Positions 22,007 to 39,500 of a DNA stretch of 64,000 nt are shown piece after piece. Where the stretch lies: the NCBI RefSeq assembly GCF_000143415.4, contig NW_003314360.1:228284-292283 (forward strand). Reading direction: 5' to 3'. Origin of the DNA: Selaginella moellendorffii. Its lineage: Eukaryota > Plantae > Lycopodiophyta. The notes beneath the pieces were generated by a model. It was not told the DNA's origin, ran no database searches, and saw only the letters and a list, made by a program, of their open reading frames with translations. The translations under genes and the position numbers were made by a program. The first letter of the stretch is position 1. The number at the start of each line of letters is the position of its first letter.

Positions 22007-22719
22007 AAAGCAAGAGTTTTATTTATGCAGTCTCTGGTCCACGATTACGCTAGAAGAAGTTGCCAAGGAGAGATTCAGGGAGAATATTACTTTTTCACGT
22101 GCTAGTGAGTTCGATTCCCGGTACCAGTCACTTTTCAGCCGTGAAGCGTTTCATGCTGTTGTCTGAGACTGCAAAATGCATCCCTGGACAATCTATCATG
22201 CATGAGAAAAGCGTACATGAAATATGAGGAGACTAGCAATTGCCCAGCAAATGCTGGGTGGTTGGCAAATTTGATGCCATTTGAAGAGGTTTTCTAAGCT
22301 TAGTTATGTTTGCTGTTTAATCAACTCCACAATTGAAAGACATTCTCATAACCAAATGTGTTATGAGCATTATATAAGCTAGATTAGATAACTGTTGAGT
22401 TGCATTCCTCCATTTTGAACACAAAAAGCCCAAAGAATACTTCCAAGTCCATCTTTGGTGCAAGTGTTGGTACTTGCTCCTCAGCCTGCTAGAGAGGTTC
22501 CTGGGATGAGCAAGAAACCATTATATTGCAATGAGAGTTGCACTCAAAAAGCAATAGGATGAAAACTGTACCTCTGCCATTAGCAACTAAATAGCACATG
22601 CCATAACCAAAATGGGACAGCACCCAAGGCACACTTGTTAATGCCAGCTTTGTTGTGGTGTGCATTTGAAACTCACAACTTCATGGTTGGATATAGAATT
22701 GTGCCATGTTTTTGTCAGT

Positions 22720-25700
22720 CTACTTAAGAATTTCAGCATAGACTGTATTCACAGTGTAAAAGTGTTGATCATGTGGTATAAGATTGCCTTGAAGGGGGGT
22801 TGCAAGCACTTGAACACGAAGTTGTTCAGGTGATCTACACCTTGACAGAGCAACATAAAGTTGACCATGTGTGAAAACAGGTTGGGGGAGGTAAATGCCA
22901 ACACGGTCGAAAGTTTGGCCTTGGGCTTTAGAAATAGTTAAGCAATAACCCAGACGAACTGGGAATTGTCTTCGAGACATCTTGAAAGGGATTTCAACAT
23001 CAGAAGGTGTAAGGGTAATACGTGGAATAAAAACTCGCGATCCCTTGAATTGTCCTGTGATAATTTCACAATCTAAAACGTTTTGAGATGCTTGCTTGAG
23101 AATGAGGCGTGTGCCATTGCATAAACCAATTTGTGGAGATATGTTCCTAAAAAGAATCAAAATCACATTTTGTTTTAGAATTAATTTGTGTGGTGGTAGT
23201 CCCAATGGGGTGATTGAATTTAAGAATTCAATTGGGAACTCTTCCGGTGATCTGAGTCAACTGTGTCAATGCTCAAATAAATATATGGATCACCTGGTAG
23301 TCTTTCAACAATGTCATTATTTATTCTGAATGTGTCGTCATTGAGTGGGGTGAGAATAACCTTTGATGCAGCTGTATAAGTATTTATAATATCATCGGTA
23401 TTTGGGAAAACAAAGTTTACAACAAATGTAGTGATAGATAATGCATGTGGTATTTTGATAATATCTGGTGGGAGACATGGCAACTGTAAATTACTATGCC
23501 AAGCTTGAGAAGCCATTCAGAAAAACAAAGATTACTTGAACGCATGTTTTTTGTTAATGTTAGTGTTGTAAAGAGTGACCATAGTCTATTCATTTTAACT
23601 GAGTTTGAAATAATAAAGGTTCTATGGCCATGGGGAACAACAGGAAGGGTTTGACGAAAGTCACCACTTGTAATCACTATAACGCTTCCAAATGGTTTAA
23701 AATTACATTTGAGATGTTTTAAACATTTATCAACCACAGAGAAAGCATGTGTATGAACCATACTAATTTCATCCATATGAGAACATTTGCTTGTTTAATG
23801 GTTTTTCCAACATCACTATTAATTGTTAAAGCAGAGATAGAAGTTTCATTTAAAGGAACAGGAAGTTTAAAAGTCATATGTGCTGTTTGACCATATTTTA
23901 GCAAAATGCTTGCAATCCCAGTCCATGCCATACTGATTACTTTTATTTTTTTTAATTGTAATGCTGTAATGATGGTATTAAGTAGAAAAGTTTTTCTAGT
24001 ACCACCAGGTCCATCAATAAAGAAACATTGATGTTGGTTAGTATCAATGGCATTTATAATGAGTTCAAAAATATAACGTTGTTCATAACTGAATTGATTT
24101 ATGTTTGCATTTATTTGGTCTTGTGATGGGTCAAGGATCTTTGTATTAAGCATGTGTTTGATAATAGGAGTAAGAGTTGGAGTGGTAAACCAAAATCACA
24201 ATTAGATTTATTGTGTAGTTGGAATTTTGAATTAATATCGACTAAAGCAATGTCAAAATAGTTTATGTCATTTCTAGCATAATCCTCAGACATATCAATT
24301 TTGAATTGATCCCATAATAGATTTGGATCTTTTGGTGAACAATACAAACAAATAAAAATAAATAACTGTCTTAATTGGGATGGCATTTTAAAAGTAGAAG
24401 CTTCTTGCATGTAGTGTTGCCATTCTGAATCATCTGCTAAAAGTCCCATTGCCATAGCTGCTTGTTTAAAAGAGGAGAAAGTAACACCTTCGACAGTACA
24501 TATATCCTCAAATGATATAGCACCTTTTTTATAGAGTAATATAAGCCGTAAGTGGTATAACTCACTATTAGAAGAAGATATGGAATACATTCTTGGTATG
24601 AGTTTAGTTTTTCGCTGGTGTAATTGCCATTTATGAAAGGATTTGTTATATGTGTAATGTAATGGAATTTGAGCATATGTATATTGCCTTGCATTAGTAT
24701 TTTGCATGTTTAAATTGAACCATTGTGTAAGCATTGTTCCATTTTGAGTGGCTCTTTCTAGTGCTTCTTTTTCATGACCTGGTCTGAAATAAACGTTTTG
24801 AAAATTGGGTAAATGAACTGGAAGACGTATAATAGTTAGTGATTTATCATGCATATGAAACTTAAATATACGCCACATGGCTTTAGGAGCAGAAATATAT
24901 CAAGCATTAACAAAACTTGAGATTTCGTCCCAATTTAAAGTCCCTCGTTCTTCAGATGCAGTTAAAAATTCTAATGTTGCACAGTCATAACCTTTGTATA
25001 CATATTGAAATAAATATTTAATACTTTTAATAGAAGCGCAGATCTCTACATTGATGTGTGCTTAATATTTCTTACAAAGGTATTTATTATAAGGAACAAC
25101 CCATCTGTTGTCAATAGTACAACCATTTTTTATGAAAGTGTGCCCGTTATTGGGACGGTAGTAATTAGGATAACCATCAACACAATAAATGGTTTCAACA
25201 TTAAATTCTTTTGGATAATTCTTAGAGCATTTGTTATTTTCCATGCAAGGGCTTCTAGGATTTAAATTACCACATGGACCATGTATCATATGATTTATAA
25301 TTATGTTATGCAATTCTGGTTCTAACAGTGGGTGTGGCAACTGTGCAGTGATAAATTCATCAACTGAGTCTCGATTTCTTATCTTATCTTCGCTTGATAA
25401 CATTGCTAAGAAATGACAATGAGGCAAACCTCTTTTCTGGAATTCAATAACATAAACATATGCGATGCACTTCCCAAAAATTCCTTTGATACTTATGTCA
25501 TGTAGGAATTTTTTAAGCTTTAAGTTGAAAACTCTTGAAATAAGAGCAGGTCGATCCTCAGGTGATTCATTCAGCTGTAAGTTTTGCACAATTTCAGGCC
25601 ACTTTGGGTTGCATGTAAATGTAATAAATAAGTCAGGTTTTCCAAAATGTGTGACAATAGCAATAGCATCTTGATAATGTTGTTGCATTGCTCGTGGGCT

Positions 25701-27050
25701 ACCAGGAAATGTAGAAGGCAAAATTACAATTTTTCCAGGTTCAACATTATTAGTAGCAGCTCTATTGCTAACATAGTCCATAAGACCTGTGTAGTAATCC
25801 ACTTTTAAGTGTTTTTGATGAGTGCGAAAGAAATTAAAGTTGTTAGATTCAACCTTTACATAAGCATCAACTATAAATTGTTGAGTGAGTTTCCCAGCAT
25901 GTAGCAATTGATCATAAAGGAAAGAGTTGCCAATGCTATCTCGTTGAGATAATCGATATGCATAGTACTGGAGTAGCATTATATGCGACTCATTGTAATA
26001 GATTTTTTCATGCCAACCTTTATCACCAAATGGTAAAAGTAAAGGATAAACCATAGGATCACAATTTTCATTACGAATAGAGATTTTTATTGGCTGTGAA
26101 TTATATGGATGTATGCATATTTCTCTGTCAAGAGATGGCTCACCCTCATCAATAGCGAAAACAATAGCAACATCATTAGTCTGTGGCAAATTATAACGAT
26201 GTAGATTAGTACTTTCACTTTTAACAATCATGTAAACACCACGTTTTGGGGTTCCATTGCAAATTGAGCGATGTTGTTCTTGTGATTCAAGATTATACAT
26301 CATTTGAAAAGCTTGTGCATACGGGTTTATTATTCTTAGCAAGTTATCTAATTGTAATAATAAATTAGAATCACAATTTGTGTTGAATGGGTTTTGCTTT
26401 CTAATATTTGTAGCCTCAGAAGCGTCAAGCATGTAAAGTTGTCCATATGATGGTGGCACATTAGCTGCAGGATATGCTGAAGCAATTTTGTGATAAATTT
26501 GACCATGTATTCTAAAGCAATATGGGCCTTTACCACTTAAATTATCAATATTAGCACCCATTGATGCAAAAGCCAAAGCACTGTTGAAATTTCTTATGTT
26601 AATTTTAAAATTGGGGTTTCTATTTTCATTAAAAAGCATACGCAATATAGTAGGTAAAGATGAAAGCTGGGGAAGGGAAACCTTTCCATTCTGGCAGCAC
26701 ATTAATCTTGACTCATTTTCAAAATGTAATGCACCACAAAAGACACATACGGATGATATATTTCCAATATTAAACAGTTGTATTGTATGGTCATTATAAT
26801 TCTTTTGATGTGCTAATTTATAGATAGTATAACTGTGATGATTACATGTATTTGTATTAGTTTCATTAGCATTTTCAAGGTTTATATTTGTATGACCTTC
26901 ATCAGCATATGCTATGTTTGTATTAGCATTGTCAAGATTTGAAGTAATTTTTGCATTAGCATGTTCAAGGTCTAGATTAGTTTCTTCATTACTATATGCA
27001 AGGTTGTTGTGAATATGATTATATGTGCTAGTGTCAATAGTTGGAGGCAA
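22720..27050 (-). pseudogene. Helitron Rep/PIF1-helicase, frameshifted
   Basis: Rep motifs PDLFITFTCNPKW and VIEFQKRGLPHCH; helicase motifs GPGGTRKT (Walker A mutated), DEISM, GDFRQTLPV, QFPVRLGYCLTISKAQGQT and GQLYVALSR, spread over six ORFs. Confidence 0.95.
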
Positions 27051-27692
27051 ATGGTGACGTATGCCTCTTAATACTTCACAAAGCGAGGCATATTTGCTAG
27101 GGATGATAAATGAGATGAAATAACCTATCTAGTGTCAAAGCACTTATCTTAAAATTTTCAGAGATTCTAAGTAAAAGCCAGAACTTGCCTTCTTCTTACA
27201 CTGGAAAAAAAATTAAAAAAAATTAAAAACGAAGACTATACAATGAGAGCACAATCTATACACACCTTAATCTGTAAACAAAAGAGACTAATCTAGCAAC
27301 CAATAAAACCTAGACACAGGACTGGCACACCTTTTCCAGGGTGTGGTGAGCAACTGTGAGAGGTGGGTGGGGTTTGCAAGTTAGAGAACTCACCTTGGGC
27401 TTGTTCTCTCTCGCAAAAGGACAGCGACTGCAAACTCTCTGATGGTTCTGGCTGTGAAGGCTGGCTCTGGCTTCAGCTCTGCCACTGGATAGCATCCACA
27501 AACCCAAATGAAGACATTTCAAAATTTCACAGCACACAAAAATCCAGATTGTTGGGGTTGGGGGCCAAATTAGCGGCTGCCGGGCTGACTGTGAACACAG
27601 ACCTTTGCAGGAAGAAGCACAATTGCTGCGATTGCCACTGATCCGGCAAGCAAGCGTTAGCTCAATTGCGGCAGGGCATCCAGGGCGAGCTA

Positions 27693-28520
27693 AGAAGAAC
27701 GGGCACGGGGGCAGGACACCACTGGCACACGTGTTGCTGTGCCTTCTTCTCCCGCCCCACGCGGCTTGGCCGCCTCCCATTGGCCGGGAGCAAACATCAG
27801 CAAGTCTGTGAACAGCATCAGGTTATTCCGAGAGCCACCACCCGACGCCGCTGCCTTTTTCGCCACGTCCCTGAATTCCCTCGCTCTCGCCTTTCGAGCT
27901 TTGTCGCTAAAGATCCTCACAATGGCCTCAGCAATCTCCTCCCGCTTCACAAACGCGTCGCAGCTCCTCCCGTCCGAAACTTCCACCCCGATGCGGCACC
28001 TCTCCGCCATGATCTTGCGGTTGAGCCCCTGCTCGTATATCCGAGGCCAGCAGATGATCGGCACGCCGCTGGAGACGCTCTCCAGGACCGAGTTCCATCC
28101 GCAGTGGCTCACGAATCCAGCCACTGCCCTGTGCGCCAGAACTTCTCTCTGCGGCGCCCATGAAACCACCAGGCCTCGTCCCTTGGTCCGCTCGACGAAG
28201 TTCTTGTAGAAGTCACTGTTCTTCACCAGGACTGTCGTGTCGCCCTCGTCCACGAACTGGGGCGGCCTGACTGTGAGCAAGAACGGCACCTTGCTCGCCT
28301 CCAAACCGAGCGCGAGCTCCTCGAATTCCTCCTGCGAAAGCTTCGCTATGCTGCCGAATGCAACATAGAGGACTGAGTCTGGCTCCTGCGTGTCGAGCCA
28401 GTCGAGGCATTCAGAAGAACGGGCACGGGGGCAGGACACCACTGGCACACGTGTCGCTGTGCCTTCTTCTCCCGCCCCACGTGGCTTGGCCGCCTCCCAT
28501 TGGCCAGGAGCAAACATCAG
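27693..28520. repeat. 108-bp direct repeats (27693-27800 and 28413-28520) flanking the UGT fragment
   Basis: AGAAGAACGGGCAC...CAAACATCAG occurs twice with 3 mismatches, 720 bp apart. Confidence 0.95.
27801..28412 (-). pseudogene. Captured C-terminal half of a family-1 UDP-glycosyltransferase
   Basis: CLDWLDTQEPDSVLYVAFGS and the PSPG box WAPQREVLAHRAVAGFVSHCGWNSVLESVSSGVPIICWPRIYEQ; GC-rich against the AT-rich RepHel. Confidence 0.93.
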
Positions 28521-28874
28521 AAAAATTTCTCGCGCAACCATGGCTACCGACCCTGGCCCGGGCCTGGGATCCAACGGCCGGCGAGCCTCCCCACTATCGC
28601 TTTATATGTATAGATTAAGGATGCTAGCCAGCTTCTTAGAAGGATGCCTGAAATGATTCCAGCATAATGCCAGCCCATGATTTCGTTGATGTAGTTATGT
28701 TCCTTGATGTACTCTCGATACCGTACTATTACAAGCAGCTTATAGAATTTGTTGGCGTGGATGAAAATTTCCACAAAAGTATGGTGATCCTACAGCAATT
28801 TCAACTGGAAGATGTACAAATAAAATAAAATTTCTTTGCTACTTGTGCTCTTTGAGTTTACACCGAAAACACCA

Positions 28875-29559
28875 ATGGCCCTTGCAGGATTTGTGTACTG
28901 CTTAACTTGCTTGATCGTCTTATTGTCGTCTCCGGGTGTTGCTATTGATCCGTTTGAGACGGTGATCCCCGACTGGGTGGATTCGTTTCATTTCCCGCGA
29001 CCTTCACTTAGGGTAGCTTACGGATCGCAGAACGTGACCATAGAAAGGGAGTTTTTGCCGGCTGAAGTTCTTCTGCAGCCCAAGGTGAGCATCACGAATG
29101 CTGGAAATAGAGACCTTTTTACACTTGTAATGGTGGATCCTGATCCTCCCGGTCCACAAATTCCCATTTTGAGGAACATTCTACACTGGATTGTAGTTAA
29201 TATCCCGGCTCAATCTACCAGTAAGCTCTTATTTCCAAAAGAAATCAGGACCGCTTGAGTACATTTATAATGAATTTGCAGATGTATCAGAGCAAGGAGA
29301 TCATCTTGCCCCTTATTTATCTCCTACACCAGTCCAGGGAGTCCACTGTTATTATTTTCTTCTCTTCAGACAGGTGAGAAAGACTTTGAGCAGTCCTCGG
29401 ATGACTTGAACATTGTGATTGCAGAAGAAACAAATTCATGCTGGAAGTCTGTCTGGAAGTCTTAGCAGGACTCTCTTCAGTGTCCGTGTGTTCACAGAGA
29501 AATATGATTTAGGTTATCCTGTAGATGGAGTCTTCTTCACCTCCAGAGTGATTATATAA
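28875..29559 (+). CDS. PEBP (FT/TFL1/MFT-family) protein with N-terminal signal peptide; exons 28875-29220, 29282-29373, 29425-29559
   Basis: FTLVMVDPDPPGP..LHWIVVNIP, YLSPTPVQGVHCYYFLLFRQ and RTLFSVRVFTEKYDLGYPVDGVFF; the frame is kept across GT-AG introns (191 aa). Confidence 0.88.
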
Positions 29560-34794: not shown

Positions 34795-35049
34795 TGCATG
34801 GACTCGTGATGTGGATTGGATTGCAGCTAATGAGGTGAAAGCTCTTTGTTGCATAGTGGTTCTAAATGAGGAAGTGGAGGTGCCATGTGATAGTCTCTAT
34901 CAAAAAAACATTCCAGGTAGTGAAGTGGAGACTCTTCATATATATATATATATAGATAGATAGATAGGAGAGCACAAACTTGCATAGCCATTGTCAACTT
35001 TTTCTATAAGAGTAGGCAAGTGATGTTGTATCTAAGGTACTTGTAGTTT

Positions 35050-35800
35050 TTAGTATGGTCTAGCAGGGGGTTTTCTCCTTGTTAATTGTGAGTCCTGTGT
35101 CATTGTAAAACACTACCAATATATCCAACTCACATTGGAGTTTCTCTTGAGAAGTTGTGAGGAGGATGTCATCTGTATAGAGGAGATTTGAAGATGTAGT
35201 ACATCTAAGATCACCATATAATTGAGACACATGGTGAGACATGATAGATCTGGGAGTCATGACTCTCACATGTGTATGTATAGCAATTAGGATATTTGAG
35301 TGAGAGTTTTTTCCTTTTCTTCCTCATTACAATAGGAGAAGTTGAAGGACCATACCAGTGAGGACAATTGAAAATTGAGAGCAGCTTACCATTAGAGTCT
35401 CAATGCTGTCTATGAACAGTCTAAAGAGAGTCGGTGAGAGGGGGTACCCTTGGCATACCCTTATGTCACAGGTCATGTTTGGTCTAAGATGTCTTTAGTG
35501 ACATTCTTATAGAGGCATTGTGATAAGTTCAAATGGGATGTTGAGTTTGTGGAGGTGTTGGAACAATTTGCTTCCAGAAACTTGATTGAAAGCTTTGGCT
35601 ATGTTAATGAAAGCATATATACACTAATTTGATGGACTCATTTCACAATTTGTCTAATGTGATCCACAAAGTGACCAGGTGGTCAATGCAAGAGCGATAA
35701 GGGCAGAACCCAGCATGTCCCGTCAACCTGCAGCCTTGCCACTTTGTCTATGATATAAGTCTTTTCTCTATGAGACATAATGAAAAGATTTGCATAGCAT
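35050..35800 (-). mobile_element. Non-LTR (LINE) reverse transcriptase remnant
   Basis: QGYPLSPTLFRLFID (~35410-35455) and LLYTDDILL..GLTINKEKT (35060-35190). Confidence 0.75.
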
Positions 35801-36530: not shown

Positions 36531-39500
36531 GAAGGCAAGGGTTTTGTTCACATCTTTAGCTAGAAGAAATTTAGTAAAGAATTTCAATGAAGCAAATTTT
36601 AAAATCAAAGAAAGTGTTCACCATTTTAGTGATTTTAAGGTTGGTTGTGGGGCACATCTTTTAGAAGGTGAAAAATACATTTCTTTGATATGATAATTGG
36701 ATATATCATTGTTACATGGTAAAGTAATATGATGGATGAGAAAGGCCATGCAAATCAAGTATAAAGTAGAGGTGCTAAATCTTCCTAAACCCTCTTTATA
36801 AGCCCCACCCCATTCCTTCTTGACATCTCAATACAACTTCTTGATTATTTCTCTCATTCTGGATGTAGTGCACGTGGTTTTTACCCTTTATCTTATGGTG
36901 ATTTACTATAGAATAACACTACAAAGTGGAACCTAAACCCTCCATGTGCCATGTGGAATCTGAGGTTTAGGGCCTTGGGCCACTGAACGAAGGAATGGTG
37001 CCAAACTCCCAAGCATGGAGCCAAGGAGTAACGAAACCGGACCACAAAGCAATTCCCAAGTATACAGCCCAAGGAGCAAAGGGATAGGAGCCCAGAGCAA
37101 CTTAGAACAGTCCTAGAGCAACCAGCATCCCATTGCCAGGAGTAACACACAAAACGAAACCAAATGGAGTTTAGTGCTATTTTGGCATATTGGTGGCCTA
37201 ACACAAGGACATGGGTACTCCATTAGCTAGCATGGAATGGAACTTGGGCTTAGACCCAAATTGGACACAGAACAAAGACAAGCACGCAAACAAAAACTAG
37301 ACTATGCCTCAGGTTGGCCGATTATACGCAACCTACCCACTATCCCTAATATACATTTGGAACCCCCCACAGCCCCCCCCCCCCCCTCCCTTGAGAAACA
37401 CGCGCTTTGGGCTTTCACCCTAAGCCTCCCTTAGTACCAGGAATTAGTCCCTAGGACAAGCTCGAAACTTACTAAATATGGAATGTCTCTAGATTGTGAA
37501 TTTGGACACAAGACAAACACCATTGTATTCAAGACAATCTCTACATTCTATAAGTATGCCAAATGAGTAAATCTAGACACTTTCCATAAATAGCATTTGG
37601 GACCGAAATGAGACTAACACAAAGGGCATGATAGCGAGGGTGTTTAGCAAACACAGTAAACTATCATCCAGCAATATTGAGGGACTAATTTCAATATGTG
37701 AGGGTTCTTGCCAAGCTAGTGCAAGACAGAGCAAAAGAAAACTAAGAGCCAGGCCGAGTATACTCAACTAGAAACATATAGGAGTTCCTACCTTATGTCC
37801 ATTTGGCTAAGTACAAGTGCTAAGCCCAGTAAATTAACACTTGAACAAGAGGGGCTAATAAAGGGAACTAGCAATATCGACCTCCTACCATCATGGCAGT
37901 AAGGAAAGAGTGTTCGTAAGGATTGACCGACAAGTAACTTTCGATACCCGAAATCACATTTGCGACACTCTCCCCCCCTAGGGAAGATCAACGTCCTCGT
38001 CGATGCATACTCGAGTCTAGAAAACCACTAAGAAAACAACTCTAGTAAAAGTTCACAGTATTCACACTATGTGAGAAATACACCAACTTAAATGAGTTAT
38101 GAGGCAACCTCTATATCTAACGCGGATGCGCTACTAGCTCAGACACCTTCCGGCTGTCGTCGACAAAGAAATGATCAACGGAGCTAGCCACCCTTGCTAT
38201 TTTGGGTGTCATCTAGCTTACAAAAGTGTGATATGCCCTTACCTGTAGGGATATAGAGAGAGAAGCCAAAGGTTTTAACCCTCATAAGCAAAGAAACCAA
38301 ACCTGTCAGTAAGGTTTAGATAGACTACTGTAAACAGGTAGTTAGAGTTGTTTACATGGTCACACCCTTTTTAACGAAATAAGGAACATCGACAGAGAGG
38401 CGGGTGATGTGACCAATCGATAGTAGCTACCCCATGACTAAAGATTTCACCATGCACACGAAGTGCCGAAGCCAGTCTACCTATATTAGCCTAAACTCAA
38501 AGATAAAAAAATGGACAATATCAAAGTTATAAACAATGATATCTTAGAGACTTAATCATTAATGAATAAAACTTAGATTAGAACACAAAAGTATTCCAAT
38601 GAAGTTATCATCCAATAAACCAGTAGTATAATACAGAAACCACCAAGATCATCATAATTGGTAAACATAGGATTCACCATCCAACAAAGTTCAATAACAA
38701 GTATATTATCAAGTAAACTCAATGATAAAACTTAACTACTGAAGGTTGTAGATAGTATGCTAAACAACTTACAAAAGACAACTAAAAGAACACAAAGTAT
38801 TATTAACTAACAAACACAATGCTCGCGAATGTATCACCCGAAGGAAATAACATCCTAATCTATCAAAACTAACTCGAGCAACAATCAACAAAACAAAATA
38901 AATGTGGTAAGACCAACAAACACCTGTTCATGCCAACTATCGCACTAACCAATCTGAATAGATTTCGGTCAATAATACCAAGGAATCAGAGTTGCTTAAG
39001 CAAGTGTCAACAACATCCTACTGATGTATCAATCCAGAACAAACCACAAAGAATATGTGGTATTGCGAAAAGCCAAAAGCCATCAAAGAGAATAACTAAC
39101 CATCATGAAAGATCATCAATCATCCTATCAATAAAGAGATACATAATCATTGTCAAAGAAAAAATCCACCATCCCGAAGAATAGTGAATTATTCTATATT
39201 AAAAACAATCAAACAAAACCTTTGATAAGGATAATCAACTATTATAGATGATAGTCAATCATCACTAATGATCGCCAAACGCAAATACTAACTTTAGCAT
39301 TGAAGCTAATGAGCCAAAAATGCCTTCCCCAATAACTATTAATAAATGGACCACAAGCATGAAAGCTCAAAAAACCAAAAGCTTGAAGAAACCTATAGCT
39401 AAGTCCTGCTTAACAATGATTATAAGTCTTGCACAAACTAACTTTAATGCTAAAGAAGAAATCATGGTACAACCCACAATATCCTCCTCAACACATCCAC

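Follow-up and report, generated by a model that had tools for sequence, protein, structure and literature searches.

A complete Helitron of Selaginella moellendorffii, found in the 64,000-nucleotide stretch of contig NW_003314360.1 analysed here (positions 228,284 to 292,283; hereafter the window), carries in its leader the C-terminal, UDP-sugar-binding domain of a UDP-glycosyltransferase (UGT) gene, enclosed between two direct copies of a 108-bp unit termed A. From 5' to 3' the element consists of a 94-nt terminus, the 108-nt upstream repeat (A5), 612 nt of UGT sequence, the 108-nt downstream repeat (A3) with a TAG, a leader of ~600 nt and the RepHel gene. On balance, and with considerable doubt left, the evidence favours a single capture in the leader by way of a staggered break, fill-in of the overhangs and end-joining, with the resulting chimeric open reading frame (ORF) as a neutral by-product. 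The scar left by the capture is unusual and is informative about the route by which the fragment entered.

An automated repeat search of the window gave a direct repeat in two copies (27693-27803 and 28413-28523; 96% identical, offset 720 bp), which a base-by-base comparison trims to a unit of 108 bp with three mismatches. A 23-mer of this unit occurs at only two sites in the 64 kb, with 0.00 expected by chance, and A5 and A3 encode an identical 36-aa peptide. The first-pass annotation of this DNA, which had placed a 612-bp UGT half between two 108-bp repeats 720 bp apart and the same peptide at both ends of the reading frame, is confirmed on both points. In a comparison of seven copies of the element, none of the three A5/A3 mismatches, two of them base changes in A5, recurs in any copy but that of the window, and the repeats of the founder were therefore identical (108/108). 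The Pfam UDPGT match of the UGT fragment is confined to the C-terminal part of the profile (positions 272-383 of 499, E = 7.6e-17), and the fragment contains the 44-aa PSPG box (28029-28160, ORF residues 128-171) with the pattern WAPQ...HCGWNS...Q. The N-terminal acceptor-binding domain is absent, the homology beginning near residue 288 of the 498 in the donor. Across the 5' junction the sequence of the product is ...GTTCTTCT/GAATGCC...; here the Helitron goes on TAGCTCG, and ...GGACAGG precedes the captured span in the donor. Across the 3' junction it is ...GACTTG/CTGATG...; here the donor goes on TGTTCT, and ...ATTTTT comes before the breakpoint in the Helitron. Alignment of donor, Helitron and product at the two breakpoints, a check which had been proposed earlier, found 0 nt of microhomology or filler at either UGT junction, so both are blunt.

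The canonical ends of the carrier, its RepHel gene and the Pfam UDPGT match support the claim that a Helitron captured the UGT C-terminal domain. The ends of the element (Table 1) are A/TCTATACATATAAAG... at the 5' side and ...CAATTGCTAG/T at the 3' side and have no target-site duplication. The 5'-TC and 3'-CTRR termini expected of a Helitron are present as TCTATAC... at 28614 and ...CTAG at 22233, with a subterminal hairpin (CCCAGC-ATTT-GCTGGG) 6 nt before the CTAG. The same termini occur in every copy but L003, which has CTAA at the 3' side, and L004, whose 3' end lies beyond the end of the scaffold. Insertion is between A and T, as all seven 5' flanks end in A and all six available 3' flanks begin with T. 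The window RepHel has five private frameshifts, near 27085, 24180, 23775, 23498 and 23246, whereas the ORF of L007 is intact (L007:10345-14622; 1,426 aa) and matches Helitron_like_N (2.4e-63), PIF1 (5.7e-57) and Pif1_2B (2e-14). Since the RepHel frameshifts are all private and L007 is intact, the founder element was autonomous. L007 is itself a candidate active autonomous Helitron in S. moellendorffii.

Table 1. Features of the UGT-bearing Helitron in the window (window coordinates; A5 and A3, upstream and downstream copies of the 108-bp unit)
Feature	Position	Strand	Remarks
Complete Helitron, 6,382 bp	22233-28614	-	ends set by comparison with six paralogous copies, all flanks different
Helitron 5' terminus, 94 nt	28521-28614	-	same in seven copies apart from single substitutions; TATAAA at 28601-28606
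Upstream 108-bp repeat (A5)	28413-28520	-	element positions 95-202; repeat search and base comparison
Captured UGT fragment	27801-28412	-	612 bp, 204 codons, C-terminal domain; element positions 203-814; match to L001 and Pfam UDPGT
Downstream 108-bp repeat (A3)	27693-27800	-	TAG stop 27690-27692 directly after; repeat search and base comparison
Chimeric ORF, 283 codons	27690-28541	-	7 leader codons, A5, UGT, A3, stop; ATG 28541, TAG 27690-27692
Leader/spacer, ~600 nt, 44% GC	27092-27689	-	between A3 and RepHel start; common to all copies, with private or subgroup indels
RepHel gene, broken in window copy	22720-27091	-	ORF 25062-27050 matches Helitron_like_N, E = 7e-62
3' terminus	22233-22258	-	16-nt hairpin 22243-22258, 6-nt spacer, CTAG 22233-22236

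The closest homologues of the window RepHel (25062-27050) are animal or metagenomic proteins at 44-48% identity (nemertean, hairworm, sea urchin, spider and Hydra), while angiosperm matches reach only 35-37% and the search returned no Selaginella protein. This pattern may be due to masked annotation of transposable elements, or the Helitron may belong to a lineage that differs from those usual in plants. Five degenerate tandem units of 33-36 nt, 61-79% identical to the reference copy, mark the beginning of the RepHel ORF (26854-27014) and encode an Asn/Thr-rich N-terminus of low complexity; the RNA contigs described below end around there. A protein search with the 156-aa ORF that spans A3 and the spacer found no homologues. 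The Helitron 5' end and a PEBP-like ORF on the plus strand (28836-29258) are divergently oriented, the former ~220 bp upstream of the latter.

The seven copies compared are the window and six loci (L002-L007; L002 is GL377567.1) taken from the protein cluster of the annotated chimeric protein, on seven scaffolds in all. Protein-search matches at 88-96% identity are all from S. moellendorffii. All seven copies are the same Helitron with the same A-UGT-A order, each with different flanks, and the full-length copies are pairwise 98.0-99.4% identical. Because seven independently inserted copies carry the same repeat-UGT-repeat structure, the UGT was captured once, before the element spread, and one capture followed by amplification to at least seven A/T sites is largely shown. 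The copies split into a full-length group and a group in which an 84-bp in-frame deletion takes away the last part of the UGT and the first of A3 (L002, L003 and L007); this group also shares a 16-bp duplication, and within it L003 and L007 additionally share a GCA insertion. Since these shared indels are nested among the copies, several rounds of transposition, at least three of them nested, followed the capture. As a result, what had been proposed as a snapshot of the capture mechanism turns out to be an inherited founder scar, present in seven independent copies after those rounds. The capture is nevertheless recent, with ~1% decay, as had been suggested from the open ORF beside a broken RepHel; that contrast itself holds in the window copy only and fails elsewhere, RepHel being intact in L007 and the chimeric ORF being frameshifted in two of the seven copies (L005 and L006). 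A DNA contig (run X25, record 16) and an RNA contig (run X4, record 31) agree with the flank as far as 28612 and differ from there on. The three bases beside the insertion junction are the same in filled and empty forms, and an empty-site allele would stop at 28612, which is suggestive, though only that, of a polymorphic insertion in the window.

In the donor locus L001 (GL377607.1), which holds UGT and GST genes in a tandem cluster, 10970-11581 matches exactly the captured span at 97.5% identity. Donor mRNA contigs are closer, with 5 differences over 612 bp (99.2% identical to the window), and in them the UGT coding sequence continues on both sides of the captured span, which extends from the start of the UGT C-terminal UDP-sugar-binding domain to 8 codons before the donor stop. 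As four of the five differences are window-private, only about one base separates the expressed donor from the founder insert. The donor search that had been suggested with the first description thus found the cluster locus and the donor mRNA contigs, while L001 was dropped as the exact donor for its lower identity; a more similar allele or paralogue from this tandem UGT cluster is the probable true donor. The donor UGT is part of a segment of ~17-20 kb at L001:10001-30607 that is duplicated in tandem and that also holds GST genes and kinase fragments. Gene model P0003 of this locus (498 aa) extends over 20.6 kb, apparently by fusing the two UGT duplicates, and is therefore probably wrong.

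The source of the repeated unit is different. Sequence 82-97% identical to the first ~70 nt of A is found at L006 (15270-15338) and at three L001 sites, each time as a single copy that follows, at ~115-130 nt, the 5' end of another but related Helitron. Because a single A-like module recurs subterminally in a related Helitron family, A belongs natively to the Helitron leader, of which it forms a conserved subterminal module; it carries two CCAAT-like motifs and one CACGTG. The first-pass annotation had allowed that the unit might natively flank the donor UGT, but A is absent at both breakpoints of L001 and in the donor mRNA contigs, which run through both breakpoints as UGT coding sequence. 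An origin of the unit from the donor locus is refuted by this finding, and its dismissal as an assembly artefact is refuted by the presence of the structure at seven loci on seven scaffolds and of the deletion-variant junction in independent RNA runs. In the DNA run X25 the depth is 20 over unique flank, ~458 over the 5' terminus, 270-620 over the spacer and 76-150 over the UGT, and from these ratios most members of the family seem to lack the UGT. Logan unitigs break 31 nt into A and do not bridge the 108-bp repeat, so that a joint skipping the 720 bp was neither expected nor seen.

Several elements of the related family were noted in these loci. At L006:15140-15400 the 3' CTAG of the UGT-bearing Helitron is followed directly, head-to-tail, by the 5' TC end (TCTACTACTATAAGG...) of a related-family Helitron, and this second Helitron has its single A-like module ~125 nt in. 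Three 5' ends of the related family, each with an A-like module, are located at L001:17900-18250, 35000-35250 and 36750-37000. Downstream of one of the L001 ends by ~730 nt, in the same orientation, is a protein-kinase fragment, possibly another capture.

The chimeric ORF is explained by the manner of its formation. Its 283-aa frame, described earlier as unbroken from 28541 to 27690, was recovered by the ORF call, and the TATAAA placed ~60 nt upstream of it was found within the Helitron 5' terminus, 60 nt from the ATG. Without the 720-bp insert, the same ATG opens a leader ORF of 43 codons that ends at the same TAG; the ORF lengthens to 283 codons because the length of the insert is divisible by three and the UGT is read in the frame it has in the donor, for which the chance is ~1 in 9. 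Openness of the frame is a reflection of youth and of the donor's own frame, not of selection. The proposed selection check, made as pN/pS among the copies, showed no purifying selection on the UGT part, which has 13 nonsynonymous and 5 synonymous events (pN/pS 0.79, P = 0.59), many of them GCG>GTG. A functional, selected gene, such as a UDP-sugar-binding or dominant-negative UGT fragment, could be read into the fact that the ORF is open in five of the seven copies, that, two exceptions aside, its length changes (84-bp deletion, GCA insertion) are multiples of 3, that it is transcribed and modelled as a protein-coding gene by RefSeq, and that pN/pS over the whole ORF is 0.43 (P = 0.03). The low whole-ORF value comes from the A units, which are derived from non-coding sequence, while the value for the UGT part is indistinguishable from 1, and divergence of ~1% is too low for an 849-nt frame to be lost by chance. 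With the frameshifts in L005 and L006 and the missing acceptor-binding domain also against it, selection for a function is very improbable. The chimeric product is not a working UGT. The chimeric ORF is a neutral by-product, decaying, that is transcribed within Helitron leader transcripts.

Transcription was followed in three RNA runs, whose contigs were matched to the window. RNA contigs cover 26789-27800 in all three runs, including the leader/spacer, and contigs of X3 (depth 21.8) and X4 (depth 179.5) carry the 84-bp-deletion junction (27782 to 27867) at about half the donor depth. The RepHel body, which is present in 40-100 genomic copies, has zero RNA depth, and this argues against DNA contamination of the RNA runs. 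The UGT-bearing Helitron subfamily is transcribed. One RNA contig links the Helitron 5' end with the L004 flank, where a starch-branching-enzyme-like gene has its 3' end; at least the L004 copy is therefore reached by read-through, not from the TATAAA.

The mechanism ranked first for the capture, at a little less than even confidence, accounts for the scar in the following way. Two nicks ~108 nt apart on opposite strands would open the Helitron leader as a staggered double-strand break, both long overhangs would be filled in, and a free UGT DNA fragment would be ligated between the two blunt ends by non-homologous end joining (NHEJ). The outcome would be a perfect duplication of leader positions 95-202 around the UGT, inserted after element position 202 in the orientation of RepHel, and the composite element would then spread by normal rolling-circle transposition. 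It has been shown experimentally that staggered breaks with filled-in overhangs give near-blunt ends, which NHEJ joins into tandem duplications (PMC8355091). The signature of such events, a perfect direct target duplication flanking the joint and blunt junctions, is present here. Schiml et al. 2016 and Vaughn & Bennetzen 2014, to go by their titles, reportedly describe the same outcome for plants. From these features we infer a filler-DNA-type internal capture with a scar resembling a target-site duplication.

Other routes explain the product less well. Capture by 3' read-through (end-bypass), shown experimentally for Helraiser (PMC4778049), has as its hallmark captured DNA at the 3' end and a new 3' terminus, but the insert here is internal, 202 nt from the 5' end, and the canonical 3' end is unchanged and common to the copies; the route is excluded, and the earlier remark that it does not predict long direct repeats is upheld. 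The filler-DNA model, acting by synthesis-dependent strand annealing (SDSA), agrees with an internal insert that has Helitron sequence on both sides, but it is said to predict short junction homologies (PMC6544945), and there are none. The second-ranked explanation, to which a distinctly smaller though substantial probability is given, is template switching (copy choice) during rolling-circle, second-strand or break-induced synthesis, in which the leader would be copied to position 202, synthesis would jump to the UGT, 612 nt would be copied, and re-entry 108 nt behind the exit would cause A to be copied again. This course gives exactly A-UGT-A with perfect repeats and an insert oriented as the element, and the single-stranded and circular intermediates through which Helitrons replicate (PMC4778049) offer the opportunity for it. 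Both switches would have to prime with 0 nt of microhomology, at odds with the junction homologies predicted by the filler-DNA/SDSA model (PMC6544945), and single-stranded DNA folds of A and its surroundings show no unusual structure that could stall a polymerase (z = -1.4 and -0.8). The first-pass annotation had offered template switching or integration of a circular intermediate; the former stays a live rival, but the 0-nt junctions fit break, fill-in and ligation at least as well. The latter would involve a Campbell-type integration, in which a 720-bp circle of A and UGT, or a rolling-circle product, crosses over homologously with the A of the Helitron. Its geometry fits, with 1.15 units of a 720-bp repeat, and Helitron circles exist (PMC4778049), yet the prior molecule, with A joined to both ends of the UGT, requires the same two non-homologous junctions plus an extra recombination, and neither such a circle nor a longer A-UGT array occurs in any of the seven copies, which makes this origin highly unlikely.

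Three further candidates were rejected. Tandem duplication after a plain insertion would yield A-UGT-A-UGT or need an extra precise deletion; fusion of two flanking Helitrons is at variance with a second copy that begins at element position 95 and not at the 5' terminus; and a hairpin or other structure as the cause of the duplication was dropped, as the folds of A (z = -1.4) and of the 5' 215 nt (z = -0.8) are unremarkable. Rfam gave no RNA family in the region at E <= 1.

Several points weigh against the sequence of staggered break, fill-in and end-joining in a single leader capture with a neutral ORF. The fill-in and end-joining steps are read back from the end product, and a template switch without microhomology would give an identical product. 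A stagger of 108 nt is long, and a fragment placed between filled ends requires two ligations. The captured stretch has no intron, and DNA and cDNA templates are therefore indistinguishable. The single copy of A that the direct ancestor would have carried is deduced from the related family and the depth ratios; searches with RepHel or with the 156-aa ORF protein retrieved no UGT-less sister Helitron from Selaginella that shares the 5' terminus and has one A directly joined to the spacer. The RNA-seq check, which had also been proposed, found transcripts of the subfamily leader, but in the three runs there was no contig specific to the window copy (UGT-A3 junction, 27800/27801).

There is a modest chance that the 108-bp duplication marks a capture route specific to Helitrons rather than generic break repair. 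Examples may be a copy-choice jump in rolling-circle or second-strand synthesis that re-enters behind its exit, or breaks made by the element's own nickase at defined sites of the leader. The leader module that is conserved between Helitron families begins where the duplication has its left edge. If such a route is real, it would be a third recognisable mechanism of gene capture by Helitrons, and one that can be searched for genome-wide by its scar.

How Helitrons acquire gene fragments internally is still unsettled. The 3' read-through model, which has been tested, explains terminal captures, and the filler-DNA model is based mostly on junction microhomologies; a perfect 108-bp duplication of the acceptor with blunt junctions is predicted by neither of these standard models. 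The present case is young (~1% decay) and clean, as donor, acceptor sequence and both junctions are all readable, and it concerns an autonomous element with cargo in its leader that is still amplifying, one copy (L007) being apparently intact. It also has consequences for annotation. RefSeq gives the Helitron-borne UGT fragments at L002, L003, L004 and L005 (gene models P0001, P0250, P0248 and P0241) the names isoflavone 7-O-glucosyltransferase 1, hydroquinone glucosyltransferase, linamarin synthase 1 and 7-deoxyloganetin glucosyltransferase. With at least seven such fragments annotated as ordinary glycosyltransferases under four names, the UGT counts of Selaginella are inflated. Two of the four RefSeq models add a predicted intron inside A3, for which no supporting joint was found in the three RNA runs matched to the window.

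The structure resembles the Helitron captures of maize, bats and insects, for which the filler-DNA model (Kapitonov & Jurka 2007) and stepwise internal acquisition have been discussed (PMC6544945, PMC3288121), in that a fragment of a host gene lies in a canonical Helitron with the donor elsewhere, the capture predates amplification of the subfamily, and the fragment is transcribed as part of a chimeric RNA. It differs from them in that the carrier is autonomous, as the intact L007 RepHel indicates, the insert is in the 5' leader, and a perfect 108-bp duplication of Helitron sequence flanks it; the cases that support the filler-DNA model have junction microhomologies of 2-13 bp (PMC6544945), whereas both junctions here are without any. 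Helraiser (PMC4778049) belongs to the same superfamily and has rolling-circle and circular intermediates, but its captures arise by 3' read-through with a de novo 3' end, which predicts neither the position of the insert seen here, 202 nt from the 5' end with the hairpin-CTAG end unchanged, nor the flanking repeat. Compared with the family-1 plant UGTs (GT1, PSPG-box), the fragment has the C-terminal Rossmann domain and the 44-aa PSPG box and is ~99% identical to an expressed Selaginella UGT, but it lacks the N-terminal acceptor-binding and catalytic half and the last 8 codons and has the Helitron leader peptide at both ends. The likeness is also clear to tandem duplications that arise when staggered breaks or adjacent nicks are repaired by fill-in and NHEJ (PMC8355091): the segment between the nicks is then present twice, as a perfect direct repeat, with blunt junctions that have no microhomology. 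In those duplications the copies abut, whereas here a 612-bp foreign fragment stands between them, inside a transposon that has propagated it.

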